A stretch of DNA of 64,000 nucleotides, taken from the NCBI GenBank assembly GCA_965644295.1, contig CBFFRP010000369.1, positions 1 through 64,000 of the forward strand, given 5' to 3'. This stretch comes from Paraphysomonas bandaiensis (taxonomy: Eukaryota > Protista > Chrysophyceae). The notes beneath the pieces were generated by a model that made no database searches, had not been told where the DNA came from, and saw only the letters and a program-made list of their open reading frames with translations. Both the position numbers and the translations under genes were made by a program. Each line of letters starts with the position of its first letter. Within the stretch, counting starts at the first letter, position 1. Below, piece after piece: positions 18,400-59,621 of this stretch.

Positions 18400-18485
18400 T
18401 GTATGGGGATAGTGGTGGACTCAGAGATATAAAGTTAAATATATAACAATACATTGATGGCATCTCTGTGCTGTACTCGTATGGT

Positions 18486-19139
18486 GTATGTATGTATGTA
18501 TGTATGTATGTATGTATGTATGTATGTATGTATGTATGTATGTATGTATGTATGTATGTATGTATGTATGTATGTATGTATGTATGTATGTATGTATGTA
18601 TGTATGTATGTATGTATGTATGTATGTATGTATGTATGTATGTATGTATGTATGTATGTATGTATGTATGTATGTATGTATGTATGTATGTATGTATGTA
18701 TGTATGTATGTATGTATGTATGTATGTATGTATGTATGTATGTATGTATGTATGTATGTATGTATGTATGTATGTATGTATGTATGTATGTATGTATGTA
18801 TGTATGTATGTATGTATGTATGTATGTATGTATGTATGTATGTATGTATGTATGTATGTATGTATGTATGTATGTATGTATGTATGTATGTAGGTATGTA
18901 TGTAGGTATGTATGTAGGTATGTATGTATGTATGTATGTATGTATGTATGTATGTATGTATGTATGTATGTATGTATGTATGTATGTATGTATGTATGTA
19001 TGTATGTATGTATGTATGTATGTATGTATGTATGTATGTATGTATGTATGTATGTATGTATGTATGTATGTATGTATGTATGTATGTATGTATGTATGTA
19101 TGTATGTATGTATGTATGTATGTATGTATGTATGTATGT
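18486..19139. repeat. (GTAT)n tetranucleotide array, about 650 bp
   Basis: Near-perfect array with three GTAG variant units spaced 12 bp apart near 18890-18920. Confidence 0.98.
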
Positions 19140-19261
19140 TTGTATACGTACAGTATATAGTGTGATATTGTGTAGGTGTTTGTATGTGTTGTATGTATAT
19201 AGAGGAGTGCTCTATCTTGAACTATAACGACAGCTGCATTACCAGGACCACTATTACAGAC

Positions 19262-22200
19262 ATGTCCACGGAACCCTCAGCTACTTCCTCCTCCACTCCT
19301 TTGAGTGAACCTGCCCAGGAGCTTAAAGCTAGGGGTAACTCCGCATACAGTGAGGGTGATCACGAGGAGGCTGTGAGATGCTTCACTGAGGCGTTGTCTC
19401 TCTGTCCCGACCATGAGATCCTCTTATGCAACAGGAGTATGGCGTATGCAGCTATGAGCGAATGGGATAAATCGATTGAAGATGCTAAGCAGGTGATTGG
19501 CTGGATGGATGTGTTGTGTGGTCTGATAGATGTGTCTGGCTGTGCTCACAGGCTGTGAAGTTAGCCCCAAAGTATGAGAAGGCTTATTTCCGTCTCGTGA
19601 AAGCTCTGGTAACATCTGTATTGTATTTTGATTGTGAATATAATGTGTAGTGTTGAAAATATATACTTCTTAGATTCAAAAGGAGAGATTCAAAGATGCG
19701 AGACTCTATCTGACTATTGGATTCAACGAATGCGGGAATTCAAAACACCTTCGCGTCCTGGAACAGGATATACTGGATGCTACTGGAATTCCAGTGCGCC
19801 CTAAACCACACGATTTTGATACTATTGAGGAGCTCGGAGACGGTAATTTCTCGAAAATATATAAAGCTGAACACAAGCCTACTGGAAAGGTGTACGCTGT
19901 TAAGGTCAGCGAATTAAGCTCCCGTATATTAGGAGTGTCTTATATCTAACTATATAGACAATTGAAAAAATGACTGTGGACCGAATGAAAAGACGCCATA
20001 CAAATATTCATAATGAAATTCTGATAGAGAAAAGGGTACGTCTGGAGTGAGAATGATTCCATAAACTCACTTTTTTTCAGACACTCAACAAACTTGATCA
20101 TCCCAATATAGTAACATTGTACTCTACTTTTCAAGACTATGGTACTTTGTACTATCAGATGGAGTTCTTGAGCGGTGGTGAGGTCTGGAGTCATCTTCAA
20201 GATAGCTACAGTGGATCATCTGTTGGGTGCCCTCTCTCCCTCGCCCGATTTTTCATTGCGGAGGCGATCAACGCACTGGAGTACATGCACAGGTGAGTGC
20301 AAATTTTACCATGGCTCTTTCGTTTAACACTGGCCTCTTATATTTATATAGGCGGGGAATTGTGCATAGAGGTGAACTTTTCCGCCTGGTTACACGTTTT
20401 ATTTTGACGTCATAATTTCTGTTATCGCAGATGTGAAACCCGAGAATATGTTACTCACAGCGGATGGTAAGTTTACTATCCATTATACTTCTTTCTAGTG
20501 CTTCTGATGCTAATATTAGGACATCTGAAGTTTGTAGACTTCGGCACATGCAAAGACCTTTTGCAACCTGATTTAAACGGCCAGGAATTCGTCGGGACGG
20601 CGGAATACATGAGTCCAGAGGTAGTTGAAAGCAAGGATAGCGGACCGGAAACTGACCTGTGGGCCCTAGGCGTGGTACTGTATCAGATGATGACGGGATA
20701 CACCACTTTTTTAGCAGCCAGTCCTTATTTGTCCTTTCTGCGCATCAAGCGTACGTTTATCCGACAGCCGTGTTTTGCGTCTCAGTCTACACAGAGCTTG
20801 ATATCTACTCTAATCCAACGGAACAAGAAAAAGCGACTGCAGAGTGCAGCCGCTCTCACCCAATCTTCGGATGAAAAAGTAATTCTATCATATGACAAGC
20901 TTCGCCAGCACCCCTTTTTTACAGATGCCAAAGACTTTGTGTTTCCTAATCCCTATAAGCCTGCCCCGGCTGTCAGGGTCCCTCGGCTAGGGGAGTTAGC
21001 TCTCAGGGCGGTAGGAATGGCAGCCAAAGTGGCGGCCGAAAAGATATCAGTAAACGGTGGGTCCAGGGTGGGTCTGGATAAGTGGGTACAAGAGTTTTCT
21101 CTCACACGACTACCTGAGCACTCACGGAAAGGAGTTCTGCACTATCTTAATCGCCGTGGGGAAGCCCATGCTCCCGCAGTGTACCGTCTATTCTGGTCTT
21201 CTGTAGTGGATGCGAGGTGCATACGGCCAGACTGGACAGAGAAAGAGATCCTTGGCTTCAATAGACACACTCAGGGCCACTGGGAGAAGGGATTTACGTT
21301 TGCATACGTCACCGATCCCCTCTTTGGTCGAACAGACCCTGTAAAGTGTGAGGCAGAACAGCATAACCTCCGCACCGCCATTTCTGCCATAAACAAATGC
21401 CGACCCAGATTTGTTGTGATAGGTGGAAATTTTACAAGTGCTTCGCCTGATATCGCTGCTGTGGCGTCTGGAAGTGTAGACGCTCACCTTACACAAACAG
21501 AACTGTTTCGTCGGTATATATCTGCTATGCCTTGTATTATCACATCATGCGTATTGTGATGTAGATGTGCCGCGCGTGTATCAGAAACTATTCCAGTCCT
21601 TTTTGTTCCAGGTGACCACGATTGTGCTGAGAATGGTATACCGACCCCAGAGTCTTTGGGTGAGTGTATTTTGTACCGTTGTGTAGTTGTCTCAGTTTCC
21701 TGTATTGGGCAGAACGCTACCGCAGTCGTTATGGCTGCGACCACTTTGGCTTTTGGTATGGCGGTGTCAGGCTACTAGTGATCAACTCAACTTTGATGAT
21801 TCACCCCGAGGTAAGATAGTATAATCATGACTTTGTTTTGCCTGCCTCAACCACTCGCCCTCCTGCGTTATCAGAGGGCTCCGGTACAGGCTGCCTACCA
21901 AGATACTTGGTTGGAGGAAGAATTGGAGCAGTGTAGGATGTGTGCAATGCACGTAGTTGTTTTTTCCCATCATCGGTGGTTTATTGATCATGCTGATGAA
22001 GACAACTGCCAAGACGTTGCTGTAAAGTATGCCTTATTCTTTTGAGTTCTCCCTCTGAGCTTACATTCACTGCAGGGTGATGCCGAAGACACTTCGCGAC
22101 AAGTGGCTTCCAAAGATGCGCCATGTTAAATTGAAGTATGTGTTTGCGGGAGGATGCGTATGTGACCAGAGTGCTGTAATTGCACCCTACCCTAAGAAGA

Positions 22201-22808
22201 TCGCACGGATTCGTGGTGAGACACGATCGGCATCACTTTATTTTATTTCATTCTGCATTACGAATAGATGGCAGTGGGGCGAATCGGGATGAGGACCAAG
22301 TACAGATGACGACTGAAGCACTGTGTGTGAGCGATGTATCTGTCACAGAGGCGAGCCAGGAGTGCGGGTATATGACACCTGGAAAATCTGTATGTGCTTT
22401 TAGTGTTTTGTGTAGTTCTGCGATCTCTGAAGGCGTTGAAAGCCAAGATGATACCGTGGAGCGGGATTGGAAAGAGTTACCGCCGGACATGCCGGAGTAC
22501 AGCGACACTGATTCCGAGAAGGATGGAGATGAAGAGAATAAAGATAAAGACGAGACTGAAGAGGATGACAATGTATGTGTATGATTGTGTGCTATTCCGG
22601 ACTCAATTAATGTCTACTGCTACAGGGTCTCTTCAGCCCCGACACCACTTACAACGGTCCAGAATTAGTGATAACGGCCCCCATTGGAACAGCGTCGACC
22701 GACTCTGGAGTTCAAGTGTTTCGTCTGATAGATGTGGTAAATGAGGAGTGTATGCAGCAACGTGCATTCTCGATTGATTCAATTCCAACTAAATTGGATA
22801 GAACGTAG
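19262..22808 (+). CDS. TPR + PDK1-like AGC kinase + CPPED1-like calcineurin-type metallophosphoesterase fusion (multi-exon)
   Basis: Spliced translation gives TPR (ELKARGNSAY...NRSMAY...KYEKAYFR), kinase (LGDGNFSKIY, YAVK, HRDVKPEN, DFGTCK, FVGTAEYMSPE, DLWALG) and CPPED1-like blocks (FAYVTDPLFG, PRFVVIGGN, LFVPGDHD, FGFWYGGVRLLVINS, QDTWLEEEL, VVFSHH). Kinase and phosphoesterase are joined inside the single ORF 20498-21559. Confidence 0.88.
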
Positions 22809-22961
22809 AGTAACTAATATCTGGCGGTTCAGTGTTTAGCAACAGTTCTTACTCATACAGACTATTCGTATATACATGTTTATACAGTAGTAAGTATATT
22901 CTCTTACACTCTAGAAGTAAAGCTATGACAACAAAGCCTATTACCTGGAATAGTCATTGGT

Positions 22962-23245
22962 ACAAACGTATAGCATATCTATATTAGGATTTGAGATTTG
23001 ACATTAGAATGGATAAGACTTAGTAACTGAACGTTGAACTCACTCAATAATCAACTAGATAATTAGAAGCAACATCTATTATCATTCATTGTAATTCACT
23101 GAAACAAACGTATAGCATATCTATATTAGGATTTGAGATTTGACATTAGAATGGATAAGACTTAGTAACTGAACGTTGAACTCACTCAATAATCAACTAG
23201 AAAATTAGAAGCAACATCATTCATCATTCATTGTAATTTACTGAA
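22962..23245. repeat. Tandem direct duplication, 2 x 142 bp
   Basis: ACAAACGTATAGCATATC...CTGAA starts at 22962 and again at 23104, with only a few differences. Confidence 0.95.
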
Positions 23246-24210
23246 TACATATACTTTCAATACTACCAATCAATAATAGCTATTATCATACATAATCTTA
23301 TGCAGTCAATATAATTCAGTTTAGCTGAGCTACTTCATAGCACATCATCAAAATCATATATAACTGAATGCAAATATTAAGATTAATAGTAGGCGATTTA
23401 AATTGGGATCTTTAGACACTGTGTATCGCTGTATATTAATCAAATATAGTATTCTATATTGGAGAGATAGTTAGGTTGTGGTGTTGTATTAATGAGATTG
23501 CAGCAACATCAATATAATATTTCTCTATAAGTAATATCATTAACAGATACTATATTTTCAGTTTCTTTGCATGTTCCTGATGCTGTTGTAGTTTTGTAGA
23601 CTTTGTATTTGTATTTTCATTTAATAATATACAGGATAATAGCTTCTAGCGATAAACATCAACAGGCTACAAATACGTACGTAGGTGTAGGTTGTAGGTA
23701 ATGAAATGCGGTATTCTTCAAGTAACGACTACTATTCAATGAGAAACACAGCTTTTAATTGCATACCAATATGTAAAGCTCAACAATCTAGTGCAGTCCT
23801 CCTTTTCCACTTCTCAACTACTGCGTGGATGGATATATCAGCAAACATGCTGAATAGAGATTTTGTGCCAAAGTTGTTCAGCTGTTGAATGCAGACAGAA
23901 TTCTGCTACAGCAGGATTAGCGCTGGCATATCACGGCTTTGAATTTGAAAGAGCTTGAAACTATTCCTATTACTTAGCGGTTTCATAGTAAAATGTCGAC
24001 ATAATAAATTTTCTTTGATTGGAGAGATGTAGTATTTAAATTGTTATATATCTCAAAGCGCTTCGTCCCTTTTTCCGCTCATATCTCCTAGAAAACTTAA
24101 CTGACGAAGATGATACAGAAGACTATGATGAAAGTGCTACTATTCCTTATTTACATTGCCTGTGTGCCCATGATGGAGGACAAACATCAGACTTTCATTG
24201 TAATTAATGG

Positions 24211-26298
24211 GAATTGGGCCTTACCCTTCAGGAACCTGAGCCTCCCGAACCACAGGATGAACACATGCTGACCAACCTAAAACAAGAACTCGGCCTTAAT
24301 AGCGTCCAACCAGATACTTTCAAGGCTATCTTCACAGATGGATCATACACAGCCAGTGCGCTCTCCACGCGTCGCCTCACTCATGTCAATCCGCGAACAC
24401 GATGGACACACCGAGGAGGTGCAGCGGTCGTCTACTTACCCCCAGAAAATGCCTGGGAAGATGGTACAACCATAATACTACGACTAGATACACCCTTTCG
24501 TGATGTGCCCGGTTTGGACTCATACGCATATGAACTCATAGGCACAGCCATGGGGCTTATACTCTCAACACGCATTCCCGAACACATAAGAAGCCACACA
24601 GACTATCAGGCAGTGTGCACCCGCACTGAGGAAGCACTCTCCACAAGACGCAGAGCTCTCGGTCACCGTGCAAAAGGGGTACTACTCGAAAGCATCGCGG
24701 CCAGTAGAGATTGCAAACGACAGGTGACCTGGGTGAGGTCTCATCCCGAACGACGTACCACAGATGAAACGGAGTGGACGTTTGAGGACAAGGGCATCTA
24801 TATTGCGGACGCAGTTGCGGGTGAAGACTGGCATGAAGTCGATCGCATCCTTGGAAAAAATAACTACACTGTCTGTACAATTGCGATTGACAGTGCCATC
24901 GAACGCTTACTAACTGCTGGATTATGGCACTGGCGTATGCACAGTACAAGACGGCCATACTACTCTAGCCCACTCCTTACTAATTTCCAAGATCTCTGCG
25001 ACCTAAGGACACTTGAGAACTACACTTCAACCAGAGATCAACGCTACGGACACAATCCTGATCGAGCGCCTGGCTACTGGACCAATAGCGGAGTACACCT
25101 CCCGCGCAAACTAGCTCAAGCGGATGGCAGTGCATCCAAAGACAAACTCAGCTCAAATCTACGCCAAAGAATACTCAACACGGCACTGACATGGGACAAA
25201 TCTTTCTGCATAGGGAGGAACCGGGCCAAAACCAAACAGGGGCTTGACCTGACCAAAGTCGCATGCTCTGACTGCGGGTTTCGACTAGATTCCCTAAAAC
25301 ATATGTGCCTCGACTGCACACATGAATCCATCACCCAAATAAGGGAAACTGCATTTCAATCGCATAAAAATGTGCTCCACGAAATACAGAGAACTCAGAC
25401 CTTACCCAACTGGATCACATCTGCACTACGGAGACTCTCCAGCAGAGCCTGGAATCCCTCCATCCCACAGGTCGAGAGATACTGGACTGGAACCATCACA
25501 GCAGCCCAACTGGAAACGGTCTTCGGAGATGCCATACACAACCACCTGACGGCACACAGTCTACGGAACCTAGAAACAGCGGTTATTAATCTCCTGCAAC
25601 CGCTTTACACTGCAGCGAAGCTTATGTTACAGGATCGCGGTTGTCGCTATATCACCATGTCCAAAAGGCCGCCCAGGCTACTCCCGAGACCCCGTCCGAA
25701 ACGCAGTCAGTCAAGACAACGTCCGAGAGTCCTTCGATTACTAGGGGTCCAACGAAGACCCCCCACAGCGTATCCGACTCCAGACACACGTGCACACCTC
25801 ACAGGTCCTACCCGACAGAGCACTGGACTGCCCAGACCTCCACAACGCCGACGGCTTCGACAACTCTATCTACACCCGCGGCCCCACAGGAGCACAGTAA
25901 CACAGACTACAAACCCAACTCCTCCTCCCAACAATCCCCACCACTCTCAACCCACACATCTGGAACTAGGTGCACTCAGGACCCTAATTCAGAACGCTGA
26001 GCCCCCTCCAAAACCAATGGAGACCCATCCCAAAGGGAGACCCCCAGATCAAATACGCCGGTGAGTCCACGGACACACAATAAAGGCGAATTTCATATCA
26101 CACAAAAAGAACGGAAGTGGTTGCACCTTGGTGCTTGCGGCGACGCACAAGCAGCTTTCGTAGCGTTAAATAGTAGGATAAAAGAGTTTGTATTGATTAG
26201 TTACGGGTAGTGGTCTAACTAGTATGACTAGCATTCTTCTAGCCACTAATTGATGCAAGGTCTCAACGCCTATTGCTAAATAATCAGACATTCACTAC
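24211..26298 (+). mobile_element. 5'-truncated non-LTR retrotransposon (LINE) encoding RNase H and a CCHC knuckle
   Basis: 13-bp TSD TTGTAATTAATGG at 24198-24210 and 26299-26311. ORF 24214-26064 has RNase H motifs (FTDGS, YAYE, HTDY, WVRSH, IADAVA) and CSDC-x8-H-x4-C. The ORF is open from the element's 5' junction; no RT domain remains. Confidence 0.92.
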
Positions 26299-26788
26299 TT
26301 GTAATTAATGGTGATGCTCAGTCACCCGCGGTAACGTCAAGTGTGCAGTAGGAGAGAGAAATATAGTGTACTATGTAAGACGAGCTCATAGTAAAACGGT
26401 TGAATATAGTTATGAGGGAAGTACCTTCAGTTTCTGATGTATGTGGTCTATACGTCTATACCAAGTGCGGTGATATGGGGTTGACTGGCGAATATATACT
26501 CACAAGAGTGAAAGCAGGTGTTCACTAGATTTTGCATGAATATAGTGTGAAGTGTTTAGATTAATACTTAAAATTGTTTCTTGGAAGCGCAAATCTGAGA
26601 AGCAGACGCTGCGTTTAACAAAGCAGTTAAAGGTTTACGTCGTGATGCAAAGTTTACTTCAGTGATATGATCACACTTAATAGTGTATACTAAAGGGGTG
26701 TTATTATTGCTAGCTACTTGACAAAAAAGGCAGTTGGATGCAGCCTATACCTCCACCACAAATGTCATATACTCTATACCCTATCACA

Positions 26789-27628
26789 TTATTTGCGACC
26801 TTTCTTTCCCTTCTTCTTTTTTGAATTTCCGGAGGAAGTTGCAGTCGTTATCTGCTGGGTCTGTTGTTGTGCAGCTTCCTGCTTAGCTGTCTCCACTGCC
26901 TGCTGCTGACGCTTTATGCGACTGTTAAGCTTTGGGATAAAAGTTCCCATTTTCTTAAGAAGATCTTTCTCTATAAACAAAGTAATTACGAACCAGTTAC
27001 TACGATGGAGCGTAAACTTACTTGACTTTATTTCTTCGTTGCAATAGTTTCCACTGTCATCAACTATTTGAACGCGAATTCTACCACATTTCAAGAAAAG
27101 TCTAGGATACCTCTTGTACGGCTGAAAAACATGTCAACGACAACATATTTGCACAAAAGAAATAACCTCGATAACATGACGAAGTTTCAAGCTCTGGCAG
27201 ATTTCAGACATCTCACTGACAATAGGGTCAGAGCCTGTCCATTGAAAAAGAAATCAAACATGACAATACATGATATATAATTCATCTTACAGCAATGTTC
27301 TTTCCCGATTCTGCGTCCTTGAGCATAACTTAAGTCAGAATTAATATACGCCGGCCAAATCTGAACGAACTTTGAAAAATCGAACTCGCGTACATCTGCT
27401 CACTGCAGTTAGATAACAGGAGCACAGGAACACACAGGCACTTACTCGGATCCCCCGACCATAGAAACTTTGCACTGAATGAACACAAAAGTTATGGCAG
27501 TAACGACAATGAAATCAGTCTGACTTTGGGTCGGGCATGACGGGCATCTGCGGCATACCCATGTCCTCATCCTTCGCCGCTGCCATCGCCTGGGCCTGAG
27601 CTAGTCTCTTTTTTTGGGACTTGGACAT
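26789..27628 (-). CDS. SRP19: Signal recognition particle 19 kDa protein (multi-exon)
   Basis: Spliced exons give KFVQIWPAYINSDLSYAQGRRIGKEH and GRIRVQIVDDSG...KKDLLKKMGTFIPKL, with a basic tail KKKKGKKGRK. Confidence 0.9.
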
Positions 27629-27770
27629 TATATATAGTATGGAGCGTGTTGTGGATAGGAGTTATAACTATATACTGTATATGCCAGGCTCAACTATTAC
27701 CATACCAGGCCACCTAACACAACCCTCATACTGTACTCTCATACAGCGGTACACACAATACAATACAAGG

Positions 27771-27886
27771 TACATACATACATACATACATACATACATA
27801 CATACATACATACATACATACCTACATACATACATACATACATACTTACATACTTACATACATACATACATGCATACATACATACG

Positions 27887-27918
<32 letters not shown>

Positions 27919-27978
27919 CACATACATACATACATACATATACACATACATACATACATACATACATACATACATACA

Positions 27979-28010
<32 letters not shown>

Positions 28011-28226
28011 CACATACATACATACATACATACATACATACATACATACATACATACATACATACATACATACATACATACATACATACATACATACATA
28101 CATACATACATACATACATACATACATACATACATACATACATACATACATACATACATACATACATACATACATACATACATACATACATACATACATA
28201 CATACATACATACATACATACATACA

Positions 28227-28258
<32 letters not shown>

Positions 28259-28260: not shown

Positions 28261-28579
28261 CTCATCTATGCTGCTCTATGTTGAGGTATACGTGTATTTC
28301 ACAGTGTACCATATACACTGCCTACCGTTTCGTTTAAGAGTACTACGGCATAGAGTACAGACGCGTGCAGAATTTAGCATGGGGTACAAGTACATACCCC
28401 TATCTGGTATCCCCTGTATATGTATGTCTATGTATGTATGTATGTAGTATGTATATTTGTATGAAGTACAGTACACTGTATCTTCATCTCGAACGTGTTG
28501 TACGATAATATCATATACAAACACGTCCCTCGTATATATATATATATATAAGGACTCTATCGACCTATCATATCACCTG

Positions 28580-30565
28580 ATGATGATGAGGGGATTGATC
28601 TTGATTATCAGTATCGTTAGCTGCGCATCAACAGCACTGGATGAGTATGTATGGGCGGCTGATGATAACTATGCGTGGGTTGATCTGGGAGAAGAGCACA
28701 TCCTTCACGGCAGGAATGCAAAGGGAGATAAGACATGGACCGGATACACTCTTAATGTCACCTCTCAGAGATGGCTCACTGATGATGATTTCTCTCCAGA
28801 ATCAGACTGTAAGAGCATATGGTGAGCTGTGTGTTTGTTGAGTGTGCAGATGTTTACTGACCTCATCAGGTGGCATATTCTTGTTGTTATCGTCCCAGAC
28901 AACGTAGTATGGACCAGGAATGCGTCTCTGTGGGTAACTGGATGGTCCAATACAAGTCCTCTTCCTCAGGCTACTGACGAAGATGTTTTGCTTGCTGCGG
29001 AACTTGCCATGGGCACCGGCATGATTATGGGTTCTCTTTTCCAAATTCCCAACGAGCATATCATATTCAGCTCCGATCCCATTCAGAAGAGTAGATCGGA
29101 GGATGCTATAATTGCTTTCACATGGGTGCGTGGATACATAGGTTGTGCTGCTTGTGATGTTTTTGGTGTCCTGTAGGACCACTTCCTCAACGATCCCTCC
29201 CAACCCGAGTGGTTGCTACGCTTTCCGATGGTCAAGGCTACTTTGAGGGCGATGTAAGTTCACATTACAGATTTCATCTCTCAAATTATGGACTCACTTG
29301 TATATAGGGATGCTATGACTGAATTTGCCGCTAAGAAGTTCCCCGAAGAGGACTACCGACTTGACTACTATGGTGTATGCGGGGCATCTAAGCGAGGATG
29401 GACTACATGGGACGTAGGGGCGGTTGATCCAGACAGGTATACATTAGAGTTTTGCAACCTAGAAGTCCGTCTAAGCCCTTATCAATTATTAATATGAATG
29501 TATGAGATTGCATGGTAACCCTAGATATGTAGGGTGATGGCTATTGTTCCTATCGTTTTGGATGCCATCAATTTTGTATCCGTTGAGCACCACGAGTGGC
29601 GGTCTTATGGCGGATGGAGCTGGGCTCTCAAGGACTACTATGAAATGAACCTCACGGTAATCAAAGTGTCTTCCTAAACTCATTTCCTGATATCGCTCAT
29701 TGAACCATAGGCGAGGTTTGACGATCCCAATATGGTCCTTCTACAAGAGAACGTTGACCCCTTCTTCTACAAAGACAGACTTACCATGCCAAAGCTGGTG
29801 GTTAACGCAGTGCTCGATGAATTTCAGCAGCCTGATGAGTGGGTGTGTAGAGATCCTATCTCATGTCTCTGATATCTGTTTATTGTAGTACTCACTATTG
29901 GTGGAGCGATATGCCGGGTCCCAAGCATTTTTTGATGACGCCTAACGCTGAGCACTCAGAGATCACTGGCATATTCGAGATTGTTCCTGCCATCGGCACA
30001 TACCTCACATACCTGGTGTGTCAACTATTTTTTTATCCCGGTTGAGTTAATTTGTTTGCATTTTTAGCTCTATGGTGCCACCGTTCCAACTTTCACATGG
30101 GATATCAGTGAAGCCGATGGTACCATCACTGCGACTTTAGATGGAGAAGGTGAAGTGTATGAAGCATCGATGTGGTACGCCTACTCTTGCGGTACAAACT
30201 CGGACGGAGTCATTCGCCGCGACTTCCGCATTCTAAGTATGGATGATCCCTGCCACTGTGGCATAGGATATGACGGATATTGCGCGAATTTAAAGTCATT
30301 CTGGACTCGCGAAATCCTCGAACCTCAGGTTACGGAAGACGGAACACGTGTATACAAAGCCCGCATGGATGCACCCGATGATGGGAGATATGTAGCCTTC
30401 TTCATTGATGTGAAGTACAAAGACCCAAGGGAGGGCCTAAAAGGCGACGTTCTTCCCAAGGACATGCCTGGAATGTTGGAATTTACCACTGAGGTGTCTG
30501 TGTGGCCGAATACTTTCCCTTATGAAGATTGCGTCGGTACCGAATGTTATGGAACGTTGCTTTAG
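28580..30565 (+). CDS. Secreted PqaA/AprA-family protein (alpha/beta-hydrolase fold), multi-exon
   Basis: Signal peptide, then TALDEYVWAADDNYAW, LNVTSQRWL, QIPNEHIIF..DP..RSEDAIIAFTW, GASKRGWTTW and DEFQQPDD. Confidence 0.88.
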
Positions 30566-38405: not shown

Positions 38406-39103
38406 AGTTGCTACACTGGATGTCGCCTATCTGATAATCTCTGCAAATCGAGAGCATATACAATGCTACAAACGCATATAAATCTAACGCCTACACTACT
38501 ATCGTACCTTATACTATAGGGGCGAGGATATTATATTAATGTAACGATAGGGAGGGACGTCAATGTATACACACACACACACACACACTGGTAGATCAGT
38601 GCCCTACAGAGCTACCTGTACAACACCGTACAGAGCTGAAGAGGTATGCCTGGTATGCGTATGATGGCACATCCCTGTATACAGCTACACTACACAGTAT
38701 GCTATGGAGAGGGATTGGTACCAGTACACATACCTGCTGCTGCTGTATACATAGATTCGTACAATGAAACTGACCACTGATACTGCTGCTGGTGCAGTAT
38801 TTCTGTGATAACGACGGACTCTGATTGGCTAATAAAATACAATTTTCTATTCCCCAAAGTCCAGCAGGGTATTAAATATCCAGATATTTTGATCTAGAAC
38901 TTGGAAGAAATTCAGTGTATGAAGTACAGCAGTACACACCATGTACAGAGTATGCAGTACTGATGTATGCATGTCCTACTGTGCTGTATGCCATATATTT
39001 TAGACGGGAGAATGGACGGGAGGTGGATCTGCCTCATGCATGGAAAGCAAGAACGAGATAAAGCGGCACATCACACTAATCTGACTCCACTCTCTTGAGC
39101 GCT

Positions 39104-39867
39104 ATGGCTCCTTCTAAAGCAAAGCGTCCTATTGCTGTTCGTCTAAGAGGAGTAGGTAAAGTTAAATCACCAGGACCGAGCAGACTCCTCACTTCTATTG
39201 ATGATCAAATAGCGGCTCTCGAAAATGAGATTAATGATATAACTAGTGACTCCGGCGATGAGGATTCGGATGAAAGCTCTGATAGTGACTCGGAAGGCAG
39301 TGTACATGAGGAAGAAGATTTAGTCGAGGTTCGTGATAGTGACGGTAATATAGTGTCCATCAAGTCTAAATTAAACGGTAATTCTTATCGTGTGTTGTTA
39401 TTGTTTGACGATGATTTATAGATGAAAAAATTAACCCCTTACCCAAGGAGTACTTACCTGATCCTAAGTGCGGAATTCCAAAAGCGGTAAAGGGACCACA
39501 GAAACCAAAGCAGCCACGTAAGACTAAATCTAATGACAGAACTGTGTTGGGTGCTGCAGACGGACTACAGAAAACTGTGGACGAACTCTTACGCAATTAT
39601 ACTCCATCGTCTGCTGAACGGCGGCCTTTTTGGTGCCGGATATGTAGGTATCAGGGGTGTAGTGAAGAAGACCTTATGAATCACCGGCAGTCGGAATTAC
39701 ATACCCTGGCATCAGAGCGAGAGCGGAAGCTGAGTACATGCAAGCTTTGTCGAAAGCAATTCACATCTCCTGAGCAGTTAAAGGAACACTTGAAGGGTAA
39801 AGCCCATATTGAGCGTCTTAGTCGCATGAATCAGAAGCAACAGAAGTCTAAAGACTTTCACCGATAG
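39104..39867 (+). CDS. Small protein with an acidic N-terminal region and two matrin/U1-type C2H2 zinc fingers (one intron, about 39378-39421)
   Basis: CRICRYQG...HRQSELH and CKLCRKQFTSPEQLKEHLKGKAH. Confidence 0.8.
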
Positions 39868-40348: not shown

Positions 40349-41620
40349 TCAAAGTACAAAACAGCACTTCTCACTCTTAGTGGTCTCGACATTGCACTCC
40401 GTGTGTCGCTCGGTGCATACCAACATCTCAAAATCCCGAAGAAATTTCTGCACCTGAAGTCGACCATCTGACCCAATACAAAGAAAATTGTCTGCTTCAT
40501 TTAGGGCTTTGTCAATTGCTCTGTTTATTATTTCTATGTCACGGCTATCGGCTCCAATGATATGAATTTCCCTGGCACCAACATAAACACGCTTACATAC
40601 TGCATCAACTGCAAGAGCAGCAGCCTGTAATGCAGCACTTTCGTTATCCAAAAGAGAGGCTAAGTAAAGCACCGGAAGTGCTAGATGCTCGAGAGCCTGC
40701 TCTGAGGCTATATGCATAGCAGAAGCATAGTAGCCCTCAATGGAATTGACATTTCCGTCATGCAACGGTACCTGGATATGTATCGTTCCGCCATAACATC
40801 CGGCAGAGAAGCATGCATTTACAATATCATTAGGGTTACAGTCACTTCTATCCAAGCCGTCAACATATTCCACCTGCACAATAGCACCTCTGGGCCCACC
40901 GTTAAAACAATGCATATCTCCAAGTGAAATGCACAAAATGGCACCGTGCGAAAGCTGTAAACGGCGAGTGACAGTTATACCCTTGGCTTCTACACAATGA
41001 GCAGCACTGCTATACCCTTGTAACTCTATTGCCGGGAACAGCAAAGTGCACACACCCGCTTCCGATGCAATGCGAATGTTTCGCGGATCATCGTCAACTA
41101 ATAACACATTGGACAACGACAACTTCTGTTTGTGAAGTTTATATATACACTCCATCGCTGATCCAATGTGACCCTGCTTTCCATACTCGGAAAATCCCTT
41201 TGGAGTTTTCCATGACCCATCCTCGCACCGAATAATAATTTTCCCAGCGATCTCATTTCCACCTAGCACAATAGCCAAAACCTTACGAATAAGTTCAGTC
41301 TGTCCGCTAAACGTAACCACTGCTACGTGCATGTCCTGAATTTTAACAGCCTCTTGTAGCATCGCGGTGAATACAGGACGAACATGGGCCGCTAGGGTGT
41401 CAGCAGAGCCTGTCCATCGCCCGCCAGTGTGGATCTGCACTATAGTTGCATCGAAATCAATCGCCAGCAACCTTATCCCGCCCACAGAGGCGGCTAATGA
41501 AAGAATTCGTGCAACATGGTTGTGCAATTGGCCGTTATCGCAGCTCATGGTGACAAAGCTATAGGCTGCACCAATGCAGTTTCTCCTGTGCAGTATCTTC
41601 ATGCAACTCCAGGCAGACAT
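40349..41620 (-). CDS. HAD-superfamily phosphatase + degenerate macro domain + C-terminal CaaX
   Basis: HAD motifs I-IV: AIDFDAT, VVTFS, GKQGH, LVDDDPRN. Macro-like blocks ISLGD, GAIV, IHIQVP, YYASAMHIASEQALEHLALP. Ends KCCFVL*. Confidence 0.75.
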   Translation of the reverse strand: MSAWSCMKILHRRNCIGAAYSFVTMSCDNGQLHNHVARILSLAASVGGIRLLAIDFDATIVQIHTGGRWTGSADTLAAHVRPVFTAMLQEAVKIQDMHVAVVTFSGQTELIRKVLAIVLGGNEIAGKIIIRCEDGSWKTPKGFSEYGKQGHIGSAMECIYKLHKQKLSLSNVLLVDDDPRNIRIASEAGVCTLLFPAIELQGYSSAAHCVEAKGITVTRRLQLSHGAILCISLGDMHCFNGGPRGAIVQVEYVDGLDRSDCNPNDIVNACFSAGCYGGTIHIQVPLHDGNVNSIEGYYASAMHIASEQALEHLALPVLYLASLLDNESAALQAAALAVDAVCKRVYVGAREIHIIGADSRDIEIINRAIDKALNEADNFLCIGSDGRLQVQKFLRDFEMLVCTERHTECNVETTKSEKCCFVL

Positions 41621-51058: not shown

Positions 51059-53188
51059 TCACTGATCCAATCCCTTTCGTAAGTATGCAAAAGCTCCAAA
51101 ACCTAAAACATTGTACATGAAATAAACTTTAAATATAAACGGAAGCCACGATGCCACAGCATTATCTACCTCATGTTGATTCGGGTGACTATCGTCATCT
51201 GCGATAGCCTGTGCAGTAGCCATCATGCGCCTCAGATCAATTTTTTTCTGTCTCTGTACACTTGTTGGCTCGCTACTATTTGTGTCCGGCGTACGTTTCA
51301 ATCCGCCAAACGAAAAAAACTTGCTAAATATTGACCGCCGAGAGGACCCAGCATTGGCGGATTGATCATATGAAGTGTCGGAGGCTACACTGTGGGAGCT
51401 GTCTCCCACCAACCGTATCTATGGATAAATTTGTAAGACATTATGAATTATTGTATGAATACACATCTGTACCGGAGCCTTATCATTCTTGGCCCACTCC
51501 ATGATGCTGTGGAAAGACACTGGCTGGATCCAGTCTGGTACAAACGATGTACTGTTGCTGTTATCATGAGAGGCACTCAAAGACATAGCACTCAAGGGTT
51601 CCTTATCGAGTACAGGGCCTTCTTTTCTCTTCAAGTACACGACATACGCACTATATATTACAAGTGGGACGCACAACAACACAAGCCAGGCATATTTTGC
51701 ATGGTTAGGTTCACTATGAGCATCATGCTTCCCCTGTAGGGAAATATCATTGCCAGTCCATATATATGCGCATCCAGTCCGACGCTCCCCGGAGTTGATT
51801 CCATTCGTATCACCTACCACGAAATGACCCGCTCTTATTGCCACGGAGACACCAACTCGACTGTATTTATTATCTGCTGAGGATGATGTCCCCGGATCAA
51901 GAAATTGATTACTCCAATGCCCACTATGGGTCCATCCATCACCACTTGAAGAAAACAAATATACCGAAGCGTTTACCCCTAACACTCCGTCACCCGGTGC
52001 ACCCACCACTATGTTGCCGTGGTTTATTCGTACACTATACCCGAACATACCGAACTGCTCCACCTCCGCCAAGGTGCCGAGCTCAACTACCCGTCCCCAC
52101 CACTCTGCATAATTCCCACCACCCTCTATTGGTGCATACCCCAAACGATAAACATGCGCCCCGCCAGATTGCACCTCTACGACATTTCCTTCTCCCTCTT
52201 GCTCGATATATCTGGTCATCAGATATTGGCCGACAACTACTTCACTCCCCCACACCGCCACACTGTGACCGAAGTACGTCGTAGTTTGCATATCTGGCGG
52301 TTCAAGCCGACTCACGAGCTCATACATTGTACCTGCTTCTAGGCCGTAGTATACATCGTCATAGAAACCTTGCTCAGTTACATTGCGGGCATAAATATAG
52401 ACTACCCCAGTTCTACTATTCGCCCAAGGTGCTCCGACAACCAGTCGAGACATGTGAATGTCAATACTCCAACCGAAATTCAAGTACGGTAAAGGATCCT
52501 CTGGAAATAAAACAGAATCTAACACCCAACCATCCGGTACAGGGGGGGTGTAGTCATCATCCCCAGCTGCACTGATGCCAAGGGATCGGGAGGCCGCTCC
52601 TTCATCGACGCGATAGGTGTACACTACTCCACACTGTGTATAGAGGTCACTATTGCCAACTGCACCCACAGCAAGAAGTTGGTCTTTCAACACCACGCTC
52701 CATCCGAAATGTTCGTTCTTGCTCGGCCCGTCGGAATAAAATATCCCATATTCGTCCCAGACACCATCTGTTTTGGAATACATGTACACTGCACCCGAGT
52801 TCGTGTATTGAGCATCATCACCATACGCACCAACTACAGCTGTGTCGTCATTACATGACACACTCCACCCAAAATAATCGGAATCCCCGCCTAGACTCGG
52901 TCTTAGTTTCGCTTGTATATCCCACCCCCCTGATGATGAGAGGCCATACACATAAGCCGTACCCGACTCCACTGATCGAGATGTGTCCTCATAAGAGCCC
53001 ACTATCAGTGACTCTCCACATAATGCCACACTACTACCATAACTATCCCCCTCCTCTCCGTCCTTAGAGTACAGTTTATAAGCATCAGATTCGCTGAATC
53101 CCCACTTGGAATATCCTTCTATACACACACACAGATACAGACACAGACAGACAGAGAGAGAGGAAAACAACTGCATGAGTAGATGCAT
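51059..53188 (-). CDS. FG-GAP repeat (integrin-alpha-like propeller) type I membrane protein, intron 51419-51472
   Basis: Signal peptide; about 6-7 repeats such as YFGWSVSCNDDTAVVGAYGDD...SGAVYMY; TM YAWLVLLCVPLVIYSAYVVYL; Ser-rich tail continues in ORF 51059-51412. Confidence 0.88.
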
Positions 53189-53852
53189 GCTGCGCTATAT
53201 TATGATATGCGATTACACTCACGGCATCATGAGTATATATATGTATGTATGTGTATATTATTCCCCATCACATGACATCACCTCATGCTCATATCATACT
53301 ATAGAACACACACGCTGCTGTACATACCACACTACCACACTACTCATATGTGCAGAATAGGCACTTGTACCTCAAAATACAGCACTGTACTCCATACTGC
53401 TGTATGTCATACGTATAATATTCGGATATCTACTGTGGAAAATTGGCTAAAAATTTAGATTATTATGTACAATGAGAATACCAGGTATACAGACACAATA
53501 CAGTACAACCATTGGTACATATGTACGGATAATATATGTACCAATGAGATCTCGACATAAAGCGATGAGGTTCATCGATTGGTTTATAATCCTTCTATTA
53601 ACCATCCATCTCTCTTTGCGGGAGTCTTATTGTGTGAATAGGAATACATGTATACGGTATACGGTATACTACATACATACGGTGCTGTTAATGGAGTGTT
53701 GAGCAGTGCGGTCATTCAGCACACACTCATATATATATACATGTACATGTACTCACCATGACACATGCCCTCGTTCATATCCTTCACTAGTACAGTAATC
53801 TAATGTGTCTCATCTCTCTCCTATCTCTCTCTGTATTGGTGTGACTCTAGTT

Positions 53853-55940
53853 ATGGTTCGAGACAGAGGCGTATACGCATATGCGTGCATGTGTGTGTGC
53901 ATGTGTATCACTCTGACAGCCGTCAGCTGCTCATCATCTGCCGCCCATGATAACACACAGCATATGGAGTTTCACGATACACTGTCTGGATCGGGATCAA
54001 GGGGATCCATGCAGAGCAAGTGGGTCCAGTACATAGCCGCAGATGACTCAAGTGTGGTTAAAGTTGAGTGGATATTCAGATCTGTACGCGGATTAACTCA
54101 ACGATTGAAAACGGAACATTGTGAGCCTGTGACATGGGTTGTGTCTCTTAATAACTCGTCCATTGGACAGTCCACCTGTATGTGGTCAATGAGAAGAGGC
54201 CTCTGCTCGTCTGGCTGTGTATTACCTCGTCCTAATATACGGAACACCTACTTTTATATTGATCCATTAGATCTCCTTTTCAATATATCCTCTTTCAGCC
54301 ATAACACCGAAGCATATAATCTTTGGGATCACACTCTATCGACAAAGGAATATACTGTTGTAGACACTGAGATATCAATGACCGAAACTAAATACTTGAG
54401 GTCTTTAAGTAGCGGATATTCGGAAGATTGGAAGAGTGCCAAGCCCCTCCGACTCTTTTCTTCTGACGGGTATTCCTATGATAACTTTGGCACTAGTTTG
54501 AGCATGCACAGTGATGTCACGGCTGTGGGAGCAGTAACGAGAGACCGTGGTGGTCTTGTGTTCGTCTTCTATCGACAAGGGAAGGACTTCTTTCAAGACC
54601 CTTACCCTCTGGCAGGGTACCAAGAATATTCCAATGACTTTTTCGGTTGGAGTTTGGATGTTTACGATCGCTCAATCGCCGTTGGAGCTTACCAGACTGT
54701 TGTTCAAGGCGAAGATGCCACCTCAGTCGGTGCGGTGTATGTATTCCTGCACATGTCATCTGGGTGGACGGTAGAATCATTTATACGAATTGCTCGAGAG
54801 CGTGACGGTAAGGACAAAGAAGATGATAACGCGCCACGTTACGATAATTTTGGTTGGTCTCTGAGTCTCTATGACAACACTCTAGTCGTTGGAGCTTATG
54901 GGGATGATAGTATGGGGACCTCAGCAGGAGCTGTCTATGTGTACGATCGGTTGGAAGGGCGTGCCTTCTCCTGGTCTCTGACCCAAAAACTTGTCGCAGA
55001 TGATGGGATGGCATATGCATCATTTGGATGGAGTGTGAGCCTCTACGAGAATGTGACAGCAGTGGGTGCGTATGGCGACAGTAGCGTGGACTCGTATATG
55101 GGGGCAGTATACGTGTTCCACCGTACGGATAATATGTTCTGGACGCTTGCTTCTAAGCTGGTTCCTGCAGATGGAGGAGTAAATGATTTCTTTGGGTGGG
55201 ATGTAGAGGTATGGGGAGATGTGCTTGTGTCAGGGTCCCACAGCTGGGCGTATACAGGCTCTATGGATGAGGTCCCAGTTGGTGCCGTCTACACGTATAC
55301 CCGTGATATCACGTCATCGATATCAGAGAATGGAGTATGGGGAGCAGAGTACAAGTTGAAACCAATCGATGCGGCCACGAGATACTTTGGTAATTCTGTC
55401 TCTCTGGCAGACAATACAATGGTAGTGGGTGCATTCGGGGATGCTAGCAATATGGAAGAATCTGGAAGTGCCTTTGTATACACTGCGACGTCGCACTCAT
55501 CCACCCATGAAAATGGTGACCCTATTACATCAGTCCATTGGTCAAAGCGTATTAAGTTATCAACAAATAGCACAGAGGGGTATATGGACTTTGGGTACAG
55601 TGTTGCGGTTTACGATGGTGTTGCACTGGTTGGTGCTGTGCGAGCTGATGGAGCTGTTGCGGACTCGGGGGCGGTGTTTGCATTCGTAAGATCTGTGGAT
55701 AAATCATCCCTAGGAAACCCAGTGAGCGAAACCACCTACATAGCCCTAGTATCTTTTCTTCCTGTGCTTTTTGCTATTGTATGTGCAGTTATTGGTATAG
55801 CAATGATTTTCTTGAAACCTGACAAGTCGTCCCAAATAACTGTGGTTGATGAAAGTGTCTATGGAAAAGATGACCATAGCGGCCACGATATATCTGCTCA
55901 TTCTGTCACAAGTCTTATTCCCCACCATTCCGGGAGTTAG
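53853..55940 (+). CDS. FG-GAP repeat type I membrane protein with an extra N-terminal domain
   Basis: Signal-like N-terminus from ATG 53853; 7 repeats such as NFGWSLSLYDNTLVVGAYGDD..AGAVYVY; TM YIALVSFLPVLFAIVCAVIGIAMIFL; short tail. Confidence 0.9.
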   Translation: MVRDRGVYAYACMCVCMCITLTAVSCSSSAAHDNTQHMEFHDTLSGSGSRGSMQSKWVQYIAADDSSVVKVEWIFRSVRGLTQRLKTEHCEPVTWVVSLNNSSIGQSTCMWSMRRGLCSSGCVLPRPNIRNTYFYIDPLDLLFNISSFSHNTEAYNLWDHTLSTKEYTVVDTEISMTETKYLRSLSSGYSEDWKSAKPLRLFSSDGYSYDNFGTSLSMHSDVTAVGAVTRDRGGLVFVFYRQGKDFFQDPYPLAGYQEYSNDFFGWSLDVYDRSIAVGAYQTVVQGEDATSVGAVYVFLHMSSGWTVESFIRIARERDGKDKEDDNAPRYDNFGWSLSLYDNTLVVGAYGDDSMGTSAGAVYVYDRLEGRAFSWSLTQKLVADDGMAYASFGWSVSLYENVTAVGAYGDSSVDSYMGAVYVFHRTDNMFWTLASKLVPADGGVNDFFGWDVEVWGDVLVSGSHSWAYTGSMDEVPVGAVYTYTRDITSSISENGVWGAEYKLKPIDAATRYFGNSVSLADNTMVVGAFGDASNMEESGSAFVYTATSHSSTHENGDPITSVHWSKRIKLSTNSTEGYMDFGYSVAVYDGVALVGAVRADGAVADSGAVFAFVRSVDKSSLGNPVSETTYIALVSFLPVLFAIVCAVIGIAMIFLKPDKSSQITVVDESVYGKDDHSGHDISAHSVTSLIPHHSGS

Positions 55941-56739: not shown

Positions 56740-57366
56740 TCATCTTAGTGATTATGCAGCAATACAGAGGATGACGAAGCTGAAGTTGGCTATATGCAGA
56801 AAAAATTCTTCAATCAGCTCAAAAAATTAAGAAACGGAAAGTTGAAATATCTAAGTACAGGTGCACGAGTCATGTAGTATGTACTACCAGTACATGTGAA
56901 TGCCTGTTCAGCGCAGCAAAACTGATTATATATCAGTGCTGCGCAAACGTATGCATCCTACTACACTTAATATGATGTTGCTTCTGAAAACTAACCGACA
57001 GTTGTGGCCGGATGCAAGCATATTTCAATTAATATGGGATAAATATGGTGATGATGATGTCACCGATGATGACTCAGAGGGTGATAATGAAGAAACTTTT
57101 AATTAGTTAAGAGTAGTGGGTTGATTATCAAGTGACCTTAGACTTTATAATGACAAGTACTAAAAACTACGGATGTAATTACTTACTGATTAGTCATACT
57201 AATATATGGCAATAGCATTGTTGGGCCGGTTTAAAAACTCCATAAATACTATTGATGGAACGCTATCTAACAATAGTATTGCAATATATTTTTTCCTATC
57301 CCTGAATTACGGGATGACTTGAAGCATTAGCAATAACCCGCGACAATTAATTGTTACCCAGCCCTG
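56740..57366 (+). mobile_element. Decayed hAT transposon 3' part (dimerisation-domain remnant plus terminal repeat-like ends)
   Basis: Frameshifted TTSTCECLFSAAKLII / RKRMHPTTLNMMLLLKTNRQLW. Right ends read CAGGGATAGG (57304) and CAGGGCTGGGTAACAATTAATTG (57366) on the reverse strand. Left end not identified. Confidence 0.75.
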
Positions 57367-57784
57367 ATACAGAGGAGCATGTAATCGCAAAGAGACGTAT
57401 TATCAAAAATGTGTGGTTGGGTATCAGTTGTTTGATCAAACCAGTAGCCCTACAGCAACAAGATACTTGACAATAAATATATTTGGTTAGTTGTTTCCAT
57501 AGATTATAGAATTACTGCACACTTTCTTCGCGAGTTCTAAAATCAATGTTCAGCAAATTTTAATGCATTTATATGATCGATATTTCATTGACTTAATGTA
57601 CTTTCCATTGATAATTTACCGCGGGAAATCGACTAGTTGGATTGGCTTAAGACAAAATATGCGTACAGTTTTAAAAACAAACTCCGGTCAAAAATACGTA
57701 TTTACACTGAGAAACTTTCACTACTGCAGCCAACCAAAAGCGAGAGTTTTATGCGCACTGTGATACGCCTATATGCACATCATA

Positions 57785-58897
57785 TCATCGTCCTGCCGAC
57801 TGCGCTCTGTTCGATCCTGGGAGTTTATTAGCCCCAGAATCCGAGAGGGTCATTCGTATTCTAAGTACTGCGTTTCCTGACGGAGGCCGCTCCCTCGGCT
57901 TCTTTTTCAAGGGAGGCATTGACTTGGCACGTGACATAGATGGGAACTCACGTTCAGGGAGGTCAGTGACGAGATGTGACAAGGGTGTAGAAATTTGCAT
58001 CGCTGTTTGTATCGAGGCATGTACCTGCCGCCCTACCTCCGAGGCTCGGGCCAGCACATCTGCATCCGGAGGGGAACTGAGAACACTCATAATATGATTG
58101 TTCTCTATATATAACTCATTGCTAGTTCGTTCTGCATAGTCATATATGCAACTGTCAGTATCAGCAAAGCTTGGGCGATGTGAATCTTCTATGGAGTCAA
58201 GACTGCCCCACTTAGAATCAGCGTAGGCAAGATACCGCTCTCGTATGACCCCCCTAAGTAATGCTGTGTCAGCAGCGTCCATAGTGCTAGAATTAGTCTC
58301 CAAAAGGTCAACATTGCTCGAGCTTGCCGAAGAGTTTCTTGCTCGGCGAAGGTCCGAAATAGAATGAGCAGAATGGGCTTTCTTCTTCTTGTGCTTCCAG
58401 GACTGCCGTATGTACCGCTTACGACTGGATATTATATCCCCGCAGTTGGACAAACGCCACTGCACGTTTAGATTAATAAAATTATTTACTGCACGGTTAA
58501 ATATGGCCGTGATTCGGTCGATATATTTCACATGTTTCGTAGGAGAGGGTGCTCGCATTGAAGCTGTCAGTAAGTTTAAGTCCACCTCGAGAAACTCCCT
58601 CAACAAACAGTTATCTGACGGAACTAACGATAAGACAGAAAGCAAATACAAATCCAGTTCTTTCATTCGGGTCAGTATAACATCATCGTAATACTTTCCC
58701 AAAATAACCTTAGGTGGCAGGCGCCTCGGTATATTATACCCCGCTTTCCGTATCTTCCTGTCGAAACGATCAAACTCACTGTATCTCTTCCTCGTCGCCC
58801 ACTCCTGTCCATGAAAAACAACCTTGATTACATACTCCACATGACCGGCTAACCCATAGCCTACAGTGTAACGCTGAATAGTTGCAGTGACAGCCAT
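57785..58897 (-). CDS. PX-domain protein
   Basis: HVEYVIKV...WATRKRYSEFDRF...LPPK...RMKELDLYL...LREFLE. Confidence 0.88.
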   Translation of the reverse strand: MAVTATIQRYTVGYGLAGHVEYVIKVVFHGQEWATRKRYSEFDRFDRKIRKAGYNIPRRLPPKVILGKYYDDVILTRMKELDLYLLSVLSLVPSDNCLLREFLEVDLNLLTASMRAPSPTKHVKYIDRITAIFNRAVNNFINLNVQWRLSNCGDIISSRKRYIRQSWKHKKKKAHSAHSISDLRRARNSSASSSNVDLLETNSSTMDAADTALLRGVIRERYLAYADSKWGSLDSIEDSHRPSFADTDSCIYDYAERTSNELYIENNHIMSVLSSPPDADVLARASEVGRQVHASIQTAMQISTPLSHLVTDLPEREFPSMSRAKSMPPLKKKPRERPPSGNAVLRIRMTLSDSGANKLPGSNRAQSAGR

Positions 58898-59118
58898 GAT
58901 ATTGTCAAGTAACCATACAGACTACCATAAGACTCTATACTCCACTCTACAATCAGACAACACACACAGAATACCCTAACACAGGAAACACTGATACAGA
59001 GGTACTGCTAATAAGTGTGCAGTCGTCAAGACTATTGCATTGTGTAGAGGCCTTGATTATACCACACATCTAAAGTTCCACTAATAACAGCAACCACAAC
59101 AACACACATACAAATATA

Positions 59119-59379
59119 TACATACATACATACATACATACATACATACATACATACATACATACATACATACATACATACATACATACATACATACATA
59201 CATACATACATACATACATACATACATACATACATACATACATACATACATACATACCTACATACATACATACATACCATACATACATACATACATACAT
59301 ACATACATACATACATACATACATACATACATACATACATACATACATACATACATACATACATACATACATACATACA
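59119..59379. repeat. (CATA)n tetranucleotide array, about 260 bp
   Basis: Direct observation; two variant units. Confidence 0.98.
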
Positions 59380-59621
59380 GATATGTATATGTACAACACC
59401 AGTATACCACAGTATACCCTATGTATACAACTCAATTTGTATATTTAACCAATCACACGCCAGATAAATATATCACATTGTTCTCATTTGCTAATATTAT
59501 ACTAAACAGTGGTCATCATACTCTGTCGTACATGTACTGAAACGGACTTAAAGAGGATGTCTTCAAACTATTAGCTACCTTAAGTTAACTTCTTTATCCG
59601 CTTACAGAGTGTACACCGATA

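Follow-up and report, generated by a model that had tools for sequence, protein, structure and literature searches.

Long TATG microsatellites upstream of divergently transcribed genes in Paraphysomonas bandaiensis

The first 64 kb of contig CBFFRP010000369.1 of the chrysophyte Paraphysomonas bandaiensis (assembly GCA_965644295.1; hereafter the window) contain three long arrays of the tetranucleotide TATG (CATA on the opposite strand), each situated between two genes transcribed away from each other. In the reading favoured here, to which we assign a probability of about 0.5, the arrays are lineage-specific microsatellites of promoter-upstream DNA, that is, promoter words that slippage has expanded and that are tolerated nowhere but in untranscribed promoter DNA, where their effect would at most be one of spacing, insulation, or absorption of supercoils. 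They are not the core promoters, since both mapped RNA starts lie in unique DNA, each downstream of its own TATA-like element. The arrays, at their lengths as assembled, are the following:

18485–19145, no strand: array A1, (TGTA/TATG)165; Tandem Repeats Finder, period 4, 165 copies, 98% matches; sequence read directly
27771–28256, no strand: array A2, (TACA/CATA)121; Tandem Repeats Finder, 121.5 copies, 95% matches; sequence read
59102–59379, no strand: array A3, (ACAT/CATA)70; Tandem Repeats Finder, 69.8 copies, 96% matches; sequence read

The preliminary description of this DNA had placed the same arrays within a few bases of these positions, and Tandem Repeats Finder together with direct reading confirms that all three are real. 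Its characterization of TATG as a strict pyrimidine-purine alternation with one ApT per unit is also borne out by the sequence: alternating purine-pyrimidine runs of 409, 222, 407, 144, and 102 nt extend uninterrupted within the arrays, and the ApT density, near the transcription starts, is one per 4 bp throughout. A1 comprises pure blocks of 101 and 55 units with three TAGG variants between them, A2 has its interruptions in the 5′ third and 61 pure units in the 3′ part, while A3 is interrupted by a single base substitution and a single shift of 1 bp and decays at its left edge into TATATATTTG (minus-strand reading). The purity of 95–98% suggests that the tracts are young and turn over fast. 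On the plus strand A1 reads TATG and both A2 and A3 read CATA, so the orientation of an array is not fixed relative to its flanking genes. A survey of the whole window for perfect repeats of period 1–6 and at least 16 bp found TATG to be the sole long microsatellite family, the remaining matches being tracts of 16–20 bp. Short TATG-family runs are located at 11902, 28429, and 44306, with (TATG)3 at 53240, and the other short tracts include (TA)9 at 28533 and (AC)10 at 38569.

The genes bordering the arrays form three head-to-head pairs, NAA35/TPR-kinase around A1, SRP19/PhoPQ-related around A2, and PX/EF-hand around A3:

16032–18415, minus strand: NAA35/Mak10 (NatC auxiliary subunit) transcript, ATG at 18399; Pfam and spliced RNA contig
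19262–22808, plus strand: gene with TPR followed by Pkinase, ATG at 19262, exon 1 at 19262–19492; Pfam
26789–27628, minus strand: SRP19-like gene with several small exons, ATG at 27628; motif from translation
28580–30562, plus strand: PhoPQ-activated pathogenicity-related (PqaA-like) gene with a signal-peptide-like start, ATG at about 28580; Pfam PhoPQ_related and homologs
57514–59060, minus strand: PX-domain gene transcript, coding sequence 57785–58897, ATG at 58897; Pfam and RNA contig
59622–60316, plus strand: EF-hand gene with two exons, intron at about 59750–59798, MGGG start, ATG at 59622; Pfam and sequence

Strands were checked by Pfam, and by translation for SRP19, and the location of the arrays between divergent genes, 3/3 head-to-head, stands as first described. 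The arrays lie 86/117 bp (A1), 143/324 bp (A2), and 205/243 bp (A3) from the flanking ATGs, in agreement with the 85–320 bp given earlier; the NAA35/TPR-kinase spacer of 862 bp consists of 661 bp of array and 201 bp of unique DNA. The SRP19 call is based on an exon translating to ...IWPAYINSDLSYAQGRRIGK... and on a lysine-rich C-terminal open reading frame (ORF), a Pfam search of it having given no match. Exon 2 of the EF-hand gene is 100% identical to a Paraphysomonas peptide of MMETSP1103 (P0006), which is truncated at its 5′ end; members of this genus are marine chrysophytes without colour.

The relation of the arrays to transcription is given by the ends of RNA contigs. A spliced NAA35 contig (run X8) spans 16032–18415 with an intron of 52 nt (16262–16313, GT..AG) removed; its 5′ end at about 18415 is 70 bp from A1 and leaves a 5′ untranslated region (5′UTR) of ca. 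16 nt, and X12, an independent polyA metatranscriptome, has depth bins that agree with an end close to 18413. For the PX transcript, contig L001, whose sequence is the same as that of the window and which is presumably RNA since its ends match those of the PX gene, has its 5′ end at 59060, 42 bp from A3. None of the RNA contigs of the window runs into any array. TATA-like tracts, read by eye, are found on 6/6 flanks, 20–75 nt upstream of the ATG, and the EF-hand flank has a CCAAT at about 59450 with a TATA-like element at about 59465–59476. The elements next to A1 and A2 comprise:

18438–18446, minus strand: TATA-like TTATATATT, about 30 nt upstream of the NAA35 RNA 5′ end; sequence and RNA end
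about 19195–19203, plus strand: TATA-like GTATATAG of the TPR-kinase gene; sequence
28417–28468, no strand: degenerate small (TATG)11 array in the flank of the PhoPQ-related promoter; Tandem Repeats Finder and sequence
28533–28550, no strand: TATA-like (TA)9 tract, about 30 bp upstream of the PhoPQ-related ATG; sequence and repeat survey

The mapped RNA ends and TATA-like elements being outside the arrays, the latter constitute untranscribed upstream DNA between two separate core promoters. The start-site check proposed in the preliminary description, made with the NAA35 and PX contigs, thus places both 5′ ends outside the arrays, and the statement that the arrays are promoter elements is to be divided: they do belong to untranscribed promoter DNA (RNA ends 70 and 42 bp away) and their words are enriched in promoters, but the core promoters are elsewhere. 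CCAAT/ATTGG boxes adjoin TATA-like tracts in three promoter flanks of the window (38822–38835, 53575–53590, 59448–59476), which suggests conventional core promoters of the NF-Y plus TATA type. A metagenome scan with exon 1 of the TPR-kinase gene gave distant relatives only and no transcript of this Paraphysomonas.

Since the arrays are simple repeats read from an assembly, it has to be asked whether they, although existing, owe their lengths or placement to mis-assembly, an explanation that we regard as scarcely credible. The public runs consist of k=31 contigs, which cannot span a tetranucleotide array, and in two DNA runs (X16 and X18) the stretch 18101–18500 is not covered by any contig. 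X16 and X18 were rejected as relatives, being low-coverage DNA of the same organism, and are uninformative on A1. However, the genes joined by the unique flanks on either side are colinear and in the correct orientation, these flanks are matched exactly by RNA contigs up to 42–70 bp from the arrays, and interruptions as specific as the TAGG variants and the 1-bp shift are unlikely in collapsed or expanded artefacts.

Among the spacers between genes, the arrays are confined to one class. The approximate spacer table of the window holds 16 spacers, 5 divergent, 5 tandem, 5 convergent, and 1 unknown. The probability that 3/3 arrays fall in divergent spacers is P=0.018 by spacer count (5/16) and P=7e-4 by array-free length (divergent spacers make up 8.8% of intergenic bp), and P=0.083 when divergent spacers are set only against the five tandem ones, with unidirectional promoters; these values are post hoc, with n=3, and several large spacers were annotated from ORFs alone. 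Genes rich in introns escape annotation of this kind, so large spacers that appear empty may hide genes; the plus-strand gene at 12501–15525, for instance, has at least 12 introns of 44–72 nt in 3 kb, as the GT..AG joints of two RNA runs show. Introns, convergent spacers, and the gap bearing a long interspersed nuclear element (LINE) are all free of long arrays, and the earlier claim to this effect holds for all long arrays within the window. The probabilities therefore support the promoter side against the 3′ side and transposon gaps, while the stronger assertion that the arrays occur only in head-to-head promoters is unsupported, for with 3/3 arrays in divergent spacers it is indistinguishable from a plain promoter location (P=0.083). 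Two of the five divergent spacers have no long array:

38406–39104, divergent: comparator spacer between a BK-channel gene (minus strand) and a zinc-finger gene (plus strand); no long array, (AC)10 and array-like words
53189–53757, divergent: comparator spacer separating two FG-GAP genes; long array absent, purine-pyrimidine alternation in tracts of 25–26 nt, among them (TATG)3

In the latter the tracts are located ca. 45–70 bp from the minus-strand ATG and directly upstream of the plus-strand candidate ATGs. The two genes are FG-GAP-repeat paralogs arranged head-to-head at 51062–55940 with a spacer of 569 bp.

The words of which the arrays are built are also frequent in promoter DNA free of arrays. 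In the array-free DNA of the divergent spacers array 6-mers reach 29/kb vs 4.95/kb elsewhere in the window, an enrichment of about 6x; four of them, TACATA, ATACAT, CATACA, and ACATAC, are enriched 7–9x in these parts and 5–11x at putative unidirectional promoters, while in convergent spacers array 6-mers attain only 0.45–2.9x relative to coding DNA. ATATACA/TGTATAT is found in 10/13 promoter segments. Outside the arrays there are 12 alternating purine-pyrimidine runs of at least 16 nt vs 1.65 expected, mostly upstream of ATGs, and the short TATG-family runs of 3–4 units lie in putative promoter DNA in 4/4 cases. The promoter DNA of divergent and unidirectional genes alike thus abounds in words of alternating purines and pyrimidines with a TATA-like core (TGTATATA, TACATA, GTATAC).

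Comparison with relatives indicates what an array adds to a promoter. Homologs of NAA35 (ca. 37% identity) were traced to their contigs, of which two, L008 and L009, keep NAA35 and the TPR-kinase gene head-to-head; the TPR-kinase orthologs were identified by tblastn with exon 1 (41–45% identity). The pair occupies the following positions:

NAA35/TPR-kinase pair: window 16032–22808; L008 3203–5373; L009 3039–5335

The ATG-to-ATG spacer is 149 bp in L008 and 41–68 bp in L009, with no repeat in either. By sequence comparison NAA35/TPR-kinase is an old and very compact bidirectional pair, and as its spacer is array-free in both relatives, its bidirectional promoter does not need the array. The notion of a microsatellite-based bidirectional promoter, in the sense that the array would be required, is not supported, in view of this pair and of the two divergent spacers of the window without a long array. 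In ca. 44 kb of relatives' DNA (L007–L012) no TATG-family run of at least 3 units was found; L007, with the EF-hand ortholog, has no array but lacks the synteny with PX, so it offers no counterpart of A3, and L013, from a relative 92% identical in the PhoPQ-related gene, stops short of the promoter. In L012, a 20-kb stretch with about four divergent spacers, array words occur at 3.95/kb in divergent spacers vs 3.86/kb, that is, without enrichment, which leaves the idea of an ancestral promoter vocabulary unsupported. With no array in the relatives and no word enrichment in L012, both the arrays and the promoter vocabulary appear as additions in this lineage.

According to the favoured reading, replication slippage would have inflated promoter words into (TATG)n tracts of 280–660 bp, which would persist nowhere but in the untranscribed stretch ahead of core promoters, because it is at promoters that the seed words occur, because one repeat orientation would place an ATG every 4 nt in a 5′UTR, and because introns are only 44–72 nt long. 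As each flanking gene has a core promoter of its own, with the RNA start of two genes in unique DNA, the array would push two self-sufficient core promoters apart rather than be the promoter. Any effect on expression would then be secondary and might consist in promoter spacing or insulation; alternatively, an easily under-wound tract may absorb the negative supercoils of divergent transcription, or the array may act as a sink for factors binding TATA words.

Several points weigh against this reading. The very strong confinement to promoters (P=7e-4 by length) needs a promoter-specific mutational process, hypothetical here. The distances between the dispersed words are uniform modulo 4, without period-4 phase; the proposal that these words are remnants of old arrays, still in phase, is thereby unsupported, and the lack of phase, in speaking against simple array debris, leaves a functional word possible. 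Since the enrichment is lineage-specific and absent from L012, the seed words may be array debris, or else a new cis-code, instead of an older vocabulary. Array-bearing spacers have 201–463 bp of unique DNA vs 569–699 bp in the array-less ones, which would fit arrays replacing needed spacing or function. Finally, the RNA 5′ ends stem from assembled contigs rather than cap-mapped reads and cover 2/6 flanks, the putative start sites of the other four being placed only by ATG and TATA positions.

The same observations can be turned to the view that the arrays are selected cis-regulatory elements, be it a homotypic cluster of sites for a transcription factor or TATA-binding-protein-like protein, a nucleosome-excluding or Z-DNA tract, or a platform for N6-methyladenine at ApT, serving both genes and tuning their expression by length. 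This view seems to us doubtful. In its favour, the location is promoter-only, less unique DNA is left where an array is present, and the array words are enriched 6–25x in promoters lacking an array, where they occur in either orientation and without a common phase, the pattern expected of dispersed binding sites. Moreover, strict purine-pyrimidine alternation extends over hundreds of bp between divergent transcription units. Divergent transcription generates negative supercoiling (the twin-domain model), and a superhelical density of ca. -0.04 is of the order reached behind polymerases. The B-Z transition costs about 1.3 kcal/mol per dinucleotide for CA/TG and 2.4–2.5 kcal/mol for TA; by a rough estimate from these energies a long (TATG)n would flip to Z-DNA near a superhelical density of -0.04. 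Promoter elements of TG repeats acting through Z-DNA have been documented (PMC3664823, PMC8053131). On the other hand, the orthologous bidirectional promoter is array-free in two relatives, as are 2/5 divergent spacers of the window, RNA starts, where mapped, and TATA-like elements, as seen by eye, fall outside the arrays, and very high purity together with the wide spread of lengths (70–165 units) points to turnover rather than maintenance. As regards methylation, the window holds no gene for an MT-A70 (AMT1/MTA1-type) writer. Both strands fold at a minimum free energy of 0 kcal/mol, which makes a cruciform or slipped hairpin unlikely, and a hairpin/cruciform was accordingly rejected. A still wider extension, in which a genome-wide, lineage-specific Paraphysomonas architecture would comprise about a thousand promoters with long tracts that, under the negative supercoiling of divergent transcription, either adopt the Z form or are bound by a factor of their own, keeping open an insulated domain whose length tunes both genes and which attracts transposons, is in our estimation unlikely.

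A further possibility is that the arrays, along with the word-rich promoter DNA around them, were generated or at any rate lengthened by transposons. Repeated cycles of insertion and excision of TA-targeting cut-and-paste elements with a preference for open promoter chromatin would each leave a TA plus a CA/TG-type footprint, equal to one repeat unit, and the arrays would then serve as landing pads. Footprint words of the Tc1/Sleeping-Beauty type are indeed promoter-enriched, TACAGTA/TACTGTA 10x (7 vs 10) and TACATGTA 40x (4 vs 1), with controls at about 1x, the counts being made in promoter segments such as 19150–19261, 28265–28579, 38406–39104, and 59395–59621; elements targeting microsatellites are known as well, among them the Waldo LINEs in ACAY repeats (PMC3812793). 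However, these numbers are very small, and TACCGTA shows the same enrichment as TACAGTA; the signal thus lacks specificity and is only a lead. The 150-bp flanks of 3/3 arrays share no direct or inverted match of at least 10 bp, hence neither terminal inverted repeats nor a target duplication, and slippage alone can explain long pure tracts. The only clear transposon of the window is a LINE fragment unrelated to the arrays:

24213–26297, plus strand: LINE fragment, 618-codon ORF, low coding score, no Pfam match; 13-bp target duplication

Its 13-bp target duplication, TTGTAATTAATGG, is found at about 24200–24212 and 26298–26310, and the fragment has no TATG tail. With no bounding repeats around the arrays and no such tail, a LINE tail or transposon boundary was rejected as their source. 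Altogether, we consider an origin from transposons quite unlikely.

Several known systems may be set beside the arrays. The variable tandem repeats of yeast and human promoters (Vinces et al. 2009, reviewed in PMC3899988; PMC4857002) are unstable and concentrated in promoters upstream of start sites, and they have been proposed to maintain open chromatin and, by changing in repeat number, to render expression evolvable. The arrays are likewise upstream of the transcription start in promoter DNA, as the RNA ends of NAA35 and PX indicate. Unlike the yeast repeats, which are short, AT-rich, and of many motifs, they consist of one tetranucleotide in 70–165 units (0.28–0.66 kb) and fill most of a divergent spacer. 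Promoter microsatellites of the (TG/CA)n type forming Z-DNA are represented by the human HO-1 promoter (PMC3664823), and the B-Z dynamics of TG repeats have been studied (PMC8053131). Strictly alternating purine-pyrimidine tracts upstream of genes, under negative supercoiling driven by transcription, are common to both; the unit here, however, is TA plus TG, with a higher predicted cost of the putative Z form, and the tracts are 10–20 times longer. Microsatellites bound by transcription factors include (GA)n with the GAGA factor in Drosophila and (GGAA)n with EWS-FLI1. The arrays, too, are simple repeats and candidate homotypic clusters of a word that is also dispersed in array-free promoters, but they lie between two core promoters instead of in distal enhancers, and their binding factor is hypothetical. 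In Haemophilus influenzae hifA/hifB, (TA)n is located in overlapping divergent promoters and its length affects both genes through the -10/-35 spacing. The microsatellite inside a bidirectional promoter region is the shared trait; the hif repeat is situated within the core promoter, whereas the arrays are outside both core promoters and hundreds of bp long. Contingency loci are reviewed in PMC3899988. As to the transposons targeting microsatellites, Waldo LINEs in ACAY repeats and Micron miniature inverted-repeat transposable elements (MITEs) (PMC3812793), ACAY includes ACAT, i.e., the (CATA)n repeat family, but unlike at Waldo and Micron sites no transposon is associated with the three arrays of the window.

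Some other features of the window are worth mentioning. In the convergent spacer at 15815–15960, between the intron-rich gene and NAA35, the contigs of DNA runs X16 and X18 are interrupted, leaving loose ends and skipping a piece of 56 bp, which points to a structural polymorphism, or to the insertion of an element, in other samples of this organism. A unit of 142 bp is present twice (97% identical) at 22962–23245, downstream of the TPR-kinase gene. An Rfam search and a tRNA scan of the window gave no match, nor did exact-product look-ups for NAA35, a 423-aa ORF (G11, 40349–41620), and FG-GAP, probably because the real products are spliced, as the 52-nt intron of NAA35 exemplifies. Window sequence is also present in marine polyA metatranscriptomes. 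An exon of the PhoPQ-related gene (28829–29176) is 92% identical to an NCBI protein labelled Symbiodinium microadriaticum (P0009), which is probably, judged by this likeness, a Paraphysomonas-like contaminant of that assembly.

The literature searched contains no paper on Paraphysomonas microsatellites, and although promoter microsatellites are known, a single tetranucleotide running to hundreds of bp and restricted to promoter-upstream DNA is not described in it. The conserved NAA35/TPR-kinase pair offers a clean comparison with and without an array. If neutral, the arrays still show a strongly promoter-specific mutational process. If they matter for expression, they would offer a natural setting in which to examine how bidirectional promoters in a compact stramenopile genome are shaped by the length of a repeat, by supercoiling, and by non-B DNA, and would supply an abundant marine bacterivore with rapid variation in expression.

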